A stretch of DNA of 64,000 bases from Oikopleura dioica (Eukaryota; Animalia; Chordata). Positions 7,104 through 11,047 of the stretch are shown here, one piece after another. A model generated the notes under the pieces. The model saw only the letters and a list, made by a program, of their open reading frames with translations. It searched no databases and was not told where the DNA came from. Within the stretch, counting starts at the first letter, position 1, and each line of letters opens with the position of its first letter. The stretch lies in contig OU015568.1 in assembly GCA_907165135.1 (NCBI GenBank), positions 4,216,001-4,280,000 of the forward strand, read 5' to 3'. Both the position numbers and the translations under genes were made by a program.

Positions 7104-9581
7104 TCAATATTTCTCAAGAATCCAACTCGCCATTTTTTCATTGTCTGTTCTTGTCACGACGATTGGAAGATATCCGTCGCAGTCTTTGTCGAATCCAGCG
7201 ACGATTCCGTGAAGGTACCAGCCTTCTTCTTTGCCCATATAGCACATTAATGGTCCACCATTATCGTAATTGCACTAAGAAAAAGAAAGATTGAGACCTT
7301 GTCAGATTGGCAATCTGAGATTGCCCAGAAACTTACATGCTTGAAATCTGGATCATCATTTGAGTAAGTGCTCGTGTAGCAGTCCATTTCTTCTGACCAT
7401 TCATATTCAACTAGGATAAGCAATACAGAACTGCTAAGAAATCATTTTTTATTCATTACCGAAATTTGAGCTCTCAACCATTATATTCTTGATAACACTT
7501 TGACATTGAGCTGAATCGAGTCGCTATAAAATAATTTAAGTGTTGTTATACTGACCTAGGAGTTCCGACTTAGCACTCCGAAGATAGGAGTCAAAATATT
7601 GACAAACCTGAACAGTTCCATATGAGTTTCTCCGCTCTCCGTCTCGTCCTTGAAAGCCGACAGTCACACATCTGTAGGCTTCTGGCAAGGCCCATCCAAC
7701 GTGTCCAAATCGGACAGGTTTCACATATTCAGTAAATTGGAATGATTCGAAGGTTCGGAGAACACCGATGTTATTCTCGCCCGTTTTCTGACTAAATAAC
7801 TGTAATTTACTATCAATAATATTACCTCACTTGTATTCAGGATGATAGTATCGTCTCTCTAGAATTTTGACATCCCAAGCATCCCTGTCATCAGTCTGGA
7901 AATCGTTAACACCTCCGACTGCTGCATCTGCAGTTGACAGTCCTGCGAATATCTTCCTTGCACAAAAGCCGGATGTCAAAATGTTTCTGCTTGAAATGAG
8001 CACACCCGAGCACATAATCTTCGTTTGCTTATTATCTGTTATGAGAATTGACCAGGGGAAAACATCGATTTCAAGGCTGTTACTTTCTCCGATTATCTTC
8101 GGGCTTCTTGTTTTGTTGATGCTATAGAATGGACAGATGCCTTCATTTCGAGACAAGCACATCCACTGACCCTGGTGCTCAAAGCCAAAGAAATTTGATG
8201 TGACATTGACTAAAGATGGTGCAGCCGGGCTTTCGGTAGGATGGTTGGCGCTGGCTGAAAATTCGTCGAAAGTTGGTTCCGGTCTATACTCGATTCGAGT
8301 TGGAGGAGTTGGAAAGCATTTAATGTTGCAGCCTAAACAAGGATTCTCAGTTGTTGTTTCTGTGGTAGTGGTTGTTGTTGTCGTTGTTATGGTCGTCGTA
8401 GTGGAAGTGGTAATTGTTGTCGTGGTTGTTGTCGTCGTAGTAGTTGTTGAAGTTGTCGTTGTCGTTGTGGTAGTGGTAGTTCTTGTTGTAGTGGTTGTTG
8501 TTGATGTTGTCGTCGTCGTAGAGGTAGTTGTAGTTGTGGTTGTCGTAGTCGTCGTGGTAGGAGTTGTTGTTGTCGTAGTTGATGTTGTGGTTGCTGTTGT
8601 TGTCGTCGTCGTAGTGATAGTTGTAGTTATGGTTGTCGTAGTCGTTGTGGTTGAAGTAGTGGTAGTGGTAGTCGTTGTGGTCGTAGTGGTTGTTGTTGTA
8701 GTTGCTGTTGTGGTTGTCGTAGTCGTTGTCGTACTGGAGGTGGTTGTTGTAGTTGTCGTAGTCGTCGTGGTTGTCGTAATAGCAGTGGTAGTTATTGTTG
8801 TCGTAGTCGTCGTGGTTGTCGTAATAGCAGTGGTAGTTATTGTTGTCGTAGTGGTTGTTGTTGTAGTTGTGGTCGTTGTTGGAGGCGCTGTTGTACTGAT
8901 GCAGTCAGGCAACTTGCTATCTAAGCTTGGACACCAAACACAATCCTTTTCTCTTGAGCACTCCTGAAAGGTCGCGTAAAAGCTCAAGGTTGGACATGCC
9001 CGTCGATTATCACAATTTTCTCCAGGACAGTTATGTTCGTGATAGAAACACCAAGGAGTATCACGATATAATCGTGAAACTGGCTGGTAACAACAATTGT
9101 TCGCCAAGCATTCAGCTTCAGTTGTTCCATAATAGCCACAGTCGACTTTATCCTCGTTTACAGCTGTGCATTCGCTGCTTGCTAAATCACAATCGTCATT
9201 GTTTTTTGGTCGCTCGATGCATTGATATTCTTTTTCAGACGTTGCGCAGAATAAACATCCTTCTCTAGTACATTCCTCGGGCCTTACATGAAGGTGCTCC
9301 TCAGCGGTGAATTTTTTGCAGGGTTTTCTGCAGCCTTCTTCTGATGAGGGACACTGTGACTTTCCGTAAAAAGTTTCCGGTTGGAAACACCATGGTTCAT
9401 GGCTATTTTGTCCCCATTCTGACCAGCAGCAACCGGCATTAAGACAATCGTGTTCATTATCCTTGTGACAGTTTCTCAAATTATGAGTTGTTTCTACAGC
9501 ACATTGAGCCTTCCTGTCATCTCTACAGAAATTTCCAGCTAAAACGCTTTCAAAAACTAGTAAAACTAAAGTTGCTCTCAT
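7104..9581 (-). CDS. Secreted trefoil (P-domain) + Thr-rich mucin + catalytically dead trypsin-like domain protein
   Basis: Signal peptide MRATLVLLVFESVLAG. Trefoil-type motifs CLNAGCCW..PWCF and DCGYYGTTEAECLANNCCY..PWCF. Long Thr tract. Protease-fold motifs CSGVLIS..ILTSGFC, ENNIGVL and CNYDNGGPLMC, spliced to the stop at 7104-7106. Confidence 0.9.
8350..8880 (-). repeat. Coding poly-Thr (ACN)n mucin tract
   Basis: Degenerate gtt/gtc/gta/gtg triplets on the + strand, with mixed third positions as expected for a coding repeat. Encodes roughly 175 mostly Thr residues. Confidence 0.95.
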
Positions 9582-10005
9582 TTCCTCTTCTGATTTCGCA
9601 ATCCGCGTCGTAGAAACGTCAAATAATCGTGATTTTTATGTTTTGTAAAGGTCAAAAGTGGAATCGAGAAGAAGAATCAAATACTCTGTACTTTGTCTGT
9701 CTGTTACTTAACCGCTCATATTACATCATTTATTTTTAGGTGTCTAAAAAAAGATTGATCGAAAATAATCAGAATGAAAATTAAAATATTCGCTGTCAAA
9801 TGGGTTCTTTAAAAAAAAGTTTAGATTATCTGGCACGAAAACAAAAATGCCATCATCTAAGTACAGCTTTTCATCGCTTAATAACCCGAGACTCTCGAGT
9901 CGAGGGGGCGGCATACTAAGATATATCAAAAATGCATTATTAATCGGACGAGATCAAATAAAAAGGTGGAGACGAAGAAGATCAGTAGAATCAAAAGGTT
10001 GTTAA

Positions 10006-10352
10006 ATGAACTTTTTACTAAAAGGTTTGTCTCTCAAAGAAAAAATTTTGATAATTAATTTTTTTAAGGAAATTTCGGCAAACTTCTCTTCCTCGTTGGA
10101 TTTGCCCTTGCCGAACATGGCTGGATGGATTTTCTCGACAAGAGCTTTAACAACCCACGAGCCAAACGAGCCTTTCTTTTGGGTAAAAAATAAAAAAAAA
10201 AAAAAATCATAACAAATCATTTTTAAGATGACCACGATACTCAGGGTGCTCCTGATAAAAATTACGATTTGATGATGTACGATAAACGACACTTGATTCA
10301 GTCAAGAGGATTTACTGATGATGAGTGGCAAAGACTTCTTGATTTGTTTTAA
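10006..10352 (+). CDS. Putative neuropeptide/peptide-hormone precursor (85 aa, 3 exons)
   Basis: Exons 10006-10024, 10069-10182 and 10228-10352, with 44- and 45-nt GT-AG introns. Product: MNFLLKGNFGKLLFLVGFALA-EHGWMDFLDKSFNNPRA-KR-AFLLDDHDTQGAPDKNYDLMMYD-KR-HLIQSRGFTDDEWQRLLDLF*. Signal peptide plus two KR sites. Confidence 0.75.
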
Positions 10353-11047
10353 AACTTGTGCAAACTTCCTTAAATTTTTACTAGAGCAACAAGAAAGCAG
10401 TAAAATAATGACTCTTTATCGCAATTTACAACAGTGAATTGATGAATTAAATCGAAAAACGTGAGGAAGAAATGATAATATTAGTTATCGGATAATCGGA
10501 AAATCGCGCCGATTGACTTTTTGTTTCTAATTCGGCGCCATCAAACTTGCGTTTTGGCGTGAAAGGGTTTCATCCAAAGAGATTATTTGTCTAAAAGACA
10601 GCGAAAGTTAGAGAAACTGTCTTGTTTGAACATAACCGGACTTCAAATTTGTTTCAGAAAGGTTTATCAAAAGAAGATTTAAGGAAAGACTCAAGAAAAT
10701 GAATAGGGGTGAGTTATTAACACTTGGTCAAAAGAACAGTTTCTTATGGCTGCCTACTTTTTTCATGAAAAAAATCTTACGGCGAGGTTCTTAAAAGTGT
10801 ATATGAATCGGAAATTAACGATTATCTCGTAGTTATACCAAATCGTCATTTTAAAGAATAGATCTTATCTTAATCATAATCAGACCCAGTCTCGTCAAAA
10901 CATTTAAGAAAGCGAAATTAAAATAAACATAAAGATTTCGTGACCTCTCATGGATTTTTCAACAGCGCCACCGCGCGTGCTTTATCTGAATAAAATGACG
11001 CGTAATTTCGGATATTTATTCATATTCAAATTTTGAAGAAGAGAATA

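Follow-up and report, generated by a model that had tools for sequence, protein, structure and literature searches.

g9622, an orphan gene of Oikopleura dioica predicted to encode an 85-residue secretory pre-pro-peptide

A short three-exon gene model is found on the forward strand of the window (the whole 64,000 nt stretch of DNA that was analysed), on the PAR chromosome of Oikopleura dioica OKI2018_I69 (C1:4216001–4280000 of the Okinawa assembly published in PMC8008620). A preliminary description, made by reading the sequence, had proposed three exons separated by two GT–AG introns of 44–45 nt. When the letters were re-read, the pieces translated and the exons joined by script, this model proved exact, letter for letter, giving a coding sequence of 258 nt that encodes 85 amino acids with no internal stops. 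Both introns begin with GT, end with AG and are in phase 1. The features of the gene and its predicted product, all on the plus strand, are as follows.

10003–10005 (+): in-frame TAA that abuts the ATG of the 85-residue model on its 5′ side
10006–10024 (+): exon 1, with the ATG at 10006, then five codons and one base of the seventh; beginning of the signal peptide, identical to residues 1–6 of CAG5080509.1
10025–10068 (+): intron 1, 44 nt, GT–AG, phase 1, 82% A+T
10069–10182 (+): exon 2, 114 nt, 47% GC; completes the signal peptide, then encodes predicted peptide 1 and the beginning of peptide 2
10183–10227 (+): intron 2, 45 nt, GT–AG, phase 1, 89% A+T, with two in-frame TAA codons
10228–10352 (+): exon 3, 125 nt counting the TAA stop at 10350–10352; completes the acidic middle peptide, then encodes the second KR and the C-terminal 20-mer
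10006–10112, split by intron 1 (+): predicted signal peptide, residues 1–21, with Lys6, Lys11, a hydrophobic core at residues 12–21 and Ala-Leu-Ala; likely cut after Ala21 (or Ala19)
10119–10133 (+): GWMDF, residues 24–28, internal and followed by Leu
10158–10169 (+): RAKR, residues 37–40, matching the furin/proprotein-convertase consensus R-X-K/R-R; cut predicted after Arg40
10284–10289 (+): KR, residues 64–65, the second dibasic site, in the context Y-D-K-R
10290–10349 (+): C-terminal 20-mer, residues 66–85, with a His start, Leu-Phe at the protein's own C-terminus and a net charge of −2
10399–10451 (+): possible poly(A) signals, AGTAAA at 10399 and ATTAAA at 10446, lying 47 and 94 nt past the stop; hexamer matches only

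A divergent gene on the minus strand starts at 9581, 424 bp upstream of the three-exon gene; it was read over 7827–9581 and continues below 7827. Its product combines a signal peptide and two trefoil (P-type) domains with several hundred residues that are almost pure Thr, followed by the beginning of a trypsin-like domain (Pfam Trypsin, 23 bits). The sequence reads ...SGFC at the trypsin catalytic-His motif, and the protein may thus be a fusion of a trefoil mucin with an inactive protease homologue. On the other side, the open frames downstream of the three-exon gene, up to about 13.9 kb, had no family match.

A phmmer search of 1.84 billion representative sequences with exon 3 returned an 85-residue protein, CAG5080509.1, whose residues 45–85 matched at 100%, and the full sequence of this protein is the same as that of the three-exon model. 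It is recorded as 'Oidioi.mRNA.OKI2018_I69.PAR.g9622.t1.cds', the product of gene g9622, and forms the one-member cluster UniRef100_A0ABN7RQ36, on record from one genomic contig (17,092,476 bases) only. As the model is identical to a public protein, the gene is annotated rather than hidden. It had been described as hidden and invisible in the ORF track, which is true of a list of unspliced ORFs, but the gene is present in the GenBank annotation. Thus, g9622 is already public, yet it is unnamed and undescribed; a literature search found no published account of it or of any Oikopleura neuropeptide precursor. CAG5080509.1 was used for the whole-protein searches reported below, the other searches were conducted exon by exon, and the exons were joined locally for arithmetic only.

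The annotation comes from AUGUSTUS, which was given intron hints from RNA-seq reads and exon hints from a Trinity assembly (PMC8008620), although the model of g9622 may itself be ab initio rather than hint-supported. Codon usage was scored with a log-odds table. For its training, 26 open frames, each 200 codons or longer, were taken from 170 kb of this genome. The frame of g9622 scored +2.0 bits, while the five other frames scored from −0.7 to −18.4. Relative to 1307 short open frames, exon 2 was at the 89th and exon 3 at the 91st percentile, and the whole model was at the median of 85-codon chunks taken from the long ORFs of the window. The GC content of the two larger exons is 0.47 and 0.37, and the introns are richer in A+T (82–89%). 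The median intron length in the O. dioica genome is 49 bp (PMC8008620), and introns of 44 and 45 nt, being near this value, were counted in favour of the model. Two features were counted against it, namely the length of exon 1, which is only 19 nt, and the T at −3 relative to the ATG. Together, the RNA-seq-hinted annotation and the codon usage lend modest support to a real gene. An unspliced ORF of 96 codons on the minus strand (10002–10292; GTG start, first ATG at codon 25) lies across the whole gene. It was rejected as a chance ORF on account of a codon score of −20 bits and a poly-Phe reading through the A-rich intron. No credible RNA family was found when 9400–11000 was compared with Rfam, and a match to a bacterial sRNA (22 bits, E 0.37) was rejected.

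The features of the predicted product resemble those of a small secreted precursor. The hydrophobic core at residues 12–21 has a mean Kyte–Doolittle value of about 2.8 and the N-terminus passes a crude −3/−1 rule, so the signal peptide of the preliminary description is also predicted by these simple means. The three KR-delimited peptides and the internal GWMDF that it listed were likewise present as described when the residues were read from the joined model. The part that follows the signal peptide is 64 residues long, contains 11 Asp and no Cys, and has a net charge of −4. The predicted products are 17, 23 and 20 residues in length, with net charges of −1, −5 and −2, respectively. As none of them ends in Gly, none would be amidated. 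Peptides that are all acidic and non-amidated are unusual for neuropeptides, and this was counted against g9622 as a pro-peptide gene.

Structure prediction gave no sign of a confident or globular fold for the product. AF2 run without an alignment placed helical segments throughout at low confidence (pLDDT 60, pTM 0.27), including a helix at residues 75–84 within the C-terminal peptide, and the Atlas model had a pLDDT of 0.52. In a language-model search with the whole protein, the nearest clusters were mostly assorted prohormones (PDH, DH31, NPY, galanin, urotensin, spexin and GnRH) with scores of 0.83–0.87, while the mature part recovered a more mixed set with scores of 0.79–0.86. All of these scores are below the tool's 0.9 line, and the clusters are leads only.

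The frequency with which such a pattern arises by chance was estimated from six dinucleotide-preserving shuffles of the window, in which readings from ATG to stop of at least 85 amino acids were collected, allowing up to two GT–AG introns of 40–60 nt. Spliced readings of this kind were found at 86–96 separate loci per shuffle (about 90), compared with 82 in the real window. With the addition of the crude signal-peptide rule, at least two KR or RR sites and no Cys, 0.25 models per shuffled window were left, compared with one in the real window, when each ATG was represented by its longest path alone. Over about 1000 windows, this implies hundreds of chance look-alikes genome-wide. The KR sites are enriched: g9622 has two, whereas its composition would give about 0.3 (P=0.027, shuffling).

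The GWMDF pentapeptide was examined in the same way across the 64.28 Mb assembly (19 contigs). DNA that could encode GWMDF was found in two places, and the copy outside g9622 (C4:9836144–9836158) lies within a longer ORF but not in its frame. DNA that could encode WMDFG was found in one place (C5:14434305–14434318), also out of frame; stops close by interrupt its frame, and a longer open frame runs alongside. The pentapeptide therefore occurs at about the chance rate. As a rough estimate, the a priori chance of finding this one word inside a secreted-looking model is of the order of 1e-3. That figure is tempered because any of many well-known motifs would have caught the eye of the reader of the sequence, and because GWMDF is not in a functional position here. 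Taken together, the shuffle counts and the GWMDF counts indicate that the sequence pattern alone is not beyond chance.

One rival reading is that g9622 is a gene-prediction artefact, a chance spliced ORF in a 1 kb gap between real genes that yields no stable protein. The reader of the sequence and AUGUSTUS would then both have been led by the same sequence signals. The counts per shuffled 64 kb, roughly 90 spliced ORFs reaching 85 residues or more and 0.25 prohormone-like models, are consistent with this, as are the short first exon and the weak codon support (+2 bits). The protein is also a singleton without a homologue, and a collection of 15 billion proteins has it from no other source. However, RNA-seq intron and exon hints were used by the annotation pipeline (PMC8008620), the frame of the model is the best of the six, the contrast in composition between exons and introns is typical, the KR sites are enriched, and a canonical A-x-A signal-peptide end adjoins the 10-residue hydrophobic core. 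On balance, we consider an artefact somewhat unlikely.

The search for relatives was unproductive. When the genome of O. dioica was searched exon by exon for paralogues, only the locus itself was recovered. Exon 3 had no credible homologue besides itself among the 1.84 billion representatives and no match among the PDB sequences, and a word-index search with CAG5080509.1 returned only this protein. Exon 3 also matched a 718-residue bacterial repeat protein via its ...FTDDGGNEE... repeat, which was rejected as compositional. A Pfam match to the MCM7 winged helix, obtained with the exon pieces and with CAG5080509.1, had an E value of 0.01–0.04 and 14–16 bits against a cut-off of 26.5, and was rejected as chance. 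In a metagenome scan, an exact 11-residue word corresponding to residues 28–38 of g9622 was found in a 640-residue ORF that has no Pfam match. This ORF belongs to a family found at three loci, as follows.

L004:1942–3864, also L005 and L006: metagenomic 640-residue ORF family, in JGI contigs Ga0222671_1000255, Ga0222674_1000975 and Ga0222647_1001796

Over the shared word the DNA is identical at 24 of 33 positions and the flanks are at chance level, and the match is most likely a pattern-selected coincidence. At such a short length these searches are blind to relatives below roughly 50–55% identity, and the DNA collections held no other Oikopleura genomes, so that 'orphan' here means that no relative was detectable by these searches.

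Two families of peptide hormones had been suggested as possible kin. Members of the CCK/gastrin family end in a C-terminal amidated ...GWMDF, with a sulphated Tyr at positions 6–7 from the amide (PMC8428848). The exact pentapeptide GWMDF is common to g9622 and to cionin, CCK and gastrin (PF00918). Its position in g9622 is internal and without a Gly donor, as originally noted, since Phe28 is followed by Leu-Asp-Lys-Ser. In the CCK family the motif is near the C-terminus of the precursor, whereas in g9622 the mature product carries it N-terminally, with only Glu22-His23 and then the signal peptide before it, and the first peptide contains no Tyr. With no Gly-dibasic sequence after Phe28, no Tyr before it, a motif in the wrong part of the mature product and no match to the Gastrin profile, the proposed likeness to CCK, gastrin and cionin did not hold. 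The Pfam Gastrin profile (PF00918) found no match at E≤10 in the exon pieces or in CAG5080509.1, nor any in the whole genome, where this short profile has low power.

The second proposed likeness was to the secretin/glucagon family, whose peptides have His1 and Phe6-Thr7 and are 27–44 residues long. The C-terminal peptide of g9622 similarly starts with His directly after KR and contains G-F-T-D, as do peptides of the secretin/glucagon/PACAP type. However, His66, Phe73 and Thr74 are at positions 1, 8 and 9 of the peptide, so that the spacing is off by two, and at 20 residues the peptide is too short. The Pfam Hormone_2 profile (PF00123) had no match at E≤10 in the exon pieces or in CAG5080509.1. 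In a scan of the genome, four other, random places reached 15–19.5 bits with this profile, and the g9622 locus was not among them. This likeness was therefore also set aside. HRM domains, which form the ectodomain of class-B receptors, had six matches in the genome, four of them over the cut-off. These domains are also present in adhesion, calcitonin and CRH-type receptors, and their presence is thus unspecific for secretin-type receptors. No PACAP homologue was found in tunicate transcriptomes that included that of O. dioica, and tunicate genomes have likewise provided no member of the family (PMC7251081).

A highly derived member of one of these two families would account for some of the observations. 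The locus holds the only in-frame GWMDF of the genome in a secreted-looking protein, and there are HRM-domain (class B) receptors in the genome. The gastrin cluster was at rank 26 (score 0.79) in the language-model search with the mature part. As the two other GWMDF or WMDFG places are out of frame, there is also no canonical cionin-type WMDF-Gly exon elsewhere by exact pattern, which hints that cionin has been lost or has strongly diverged in this larvacean. Against such a derivation, the amidation signal and the upstream Tyr are lacking and the motif is in the wrong place (features from PMC8428848), neither profile matched, the His to Phe-Thr spacing and the peptide length do not fit, the tunicate transcriptomes, O. 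dioica included, yielded no PACAP-type peptide (PMC7251081), and the pentapeptide is present at about the chance rate. The failure of these defining features refutes the reading as it stands, and we regard it as highly improbable. The comparison of sequences points to coincidence, rather than homology with CCK/cionin or secretin/glucagon, for both the GWMDF word and the likeness in His...GFTD.

In its general architecture, g9622 resembles the bilaterian prohormones that are processed by PC1/3, PC2 and furin. Shared features are the short length, the signal peptide, the dibasic KR sites, an acidic spacer, the lack of Cys and of a stable fold, and a phase-1 intron within the part that encodes the signal peptide. 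It differs from them in having no amidation signal, no repeated copies and no family motif in a functional position, and in that all its products are acidic. P domains of proprotein convertases (P_proprotein) were found at about seven loci in the genome. Cu2_monooxygen domains (PHM/DBH-type) were found at three loci. The 7B2 profile (Secretogranin_V) had no match in the genome, which is uninformative either way.

Our preferred reading, to which we assign a probability of about 0.45, is that g9622 is a real, lineage-restricted gene of O. dioica for an 85-residue secretory pre-pro-peptide that is cut at RAKR and KR. It is favoured by the signal peptide, the two KR sites (one of them a full RAKR) and their enrichment, the convertase loci, the lack of a confident fold and the prohormone-like neighbours in the language-model search. 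It is weakened by the 0.25 chance models per shuffled window, the failure to find relatives and the acidic, non-amidated nature of the peptides. Secretion, cleavage and any signalling role are inferred from the sequence. The signal peptide (residues 1–21) would direct entry into the ER and then be removed. The 64-residue pro-part, acidic, Cys-free and predicted to be largely unstructured, would be cut by furin/PC-type convertases after RAKR (residues 37–40) and KR (residues 64–65), and the basic residues would be trimmed by a carboxypeptidase. Processing would release as many as three peptides (17, 23 and 20 residues), none of them amidated. The middle peptide, with its net charge of −5, looks like a spacer, and the best candidate for an active product would be the amphipathic C-terminal 20-mer ending in LF. 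The locus had been described as a novel or highly derived tunicate neuropeptide precursor. The gene model and the pro-peptide architecture fit this description and a novel precursor is possible, but the kinship with CCK and glucagon does not stand.

A further reading accepts the gene and its secretion and takes the product to be something other than a source of signalling peptides, either an intact acidic polypeptide of 64 residues or one with a single furin cut, serving as a component of the house, gut or mucus or as a chaperone-like pro-region. RAKR-type furin sites serve many non-hormone proteins in the constitutive pathway, and the presence of such a site in a product whose parts are all acidic and non-amidated is in keeping with this role. 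The 424 bp divergent upstream region is common to g9622 and to the gene for the trefoil-mucin-trypsin-like secreted protein, and helical segments are predicted throughout. However, these do not form a confident fold, there is no Cys, and searches with phmmer (exon 3) and the word index detected no similarity to known house proteins or to any other protein. We consider this reading unlikely.

Oikopleura is a minimal chordate model with a brain of roughly one hundred cells. A list of validated peptide genes would help to tie this compact nervous system to house building, feeding and spawning, and g9622 is one plausible candidate for it, no more. To our knowledge, every animal genome contains orphan small secreted proteins, and as it stands g9622 is one of these. 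The apparent lack of a canonical cionin-type WMDF-Gly exon is of minor interest with regard to gene loss in larvaceans.

A link to the LF peptides of Ciona can also be considered. The Ci-LF peptides are 5–9 residues long, and eight of them are released from one precursor. They are tunicate-specific and non-amidated, and g9622, also from a tunicate, shares their free Leu-Phe end (...Asp-Leu-Phe, stop). In contrast to them, g9622 has a single LF end on one peptide of 20 residues, and a likeness of two terminal residues is weak evidence. Neither phmmer with exon 3 nor the word index recovered any database kin of CAG5080509.1. Presumable O. dioica sequences have been placed, together with the receptors for Ci-LF, in a urochordate clade (PMC6475428), and this reported clade keeps the speculative link alive. 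It is conceivable, if quite improbable, that g9622 is a larvacean-specific neuropeptide or hormone precursor whose LF 20-mer, or a trimmed form of it, is the ligand of the orphan O. dioica receptors of the LF clade. If so, this would be the first peptide–receptor pair in appendicularians, and LF-type signalling would predate the split between ascidians and larvaceans despite the complete loss of similarity between the precursors.
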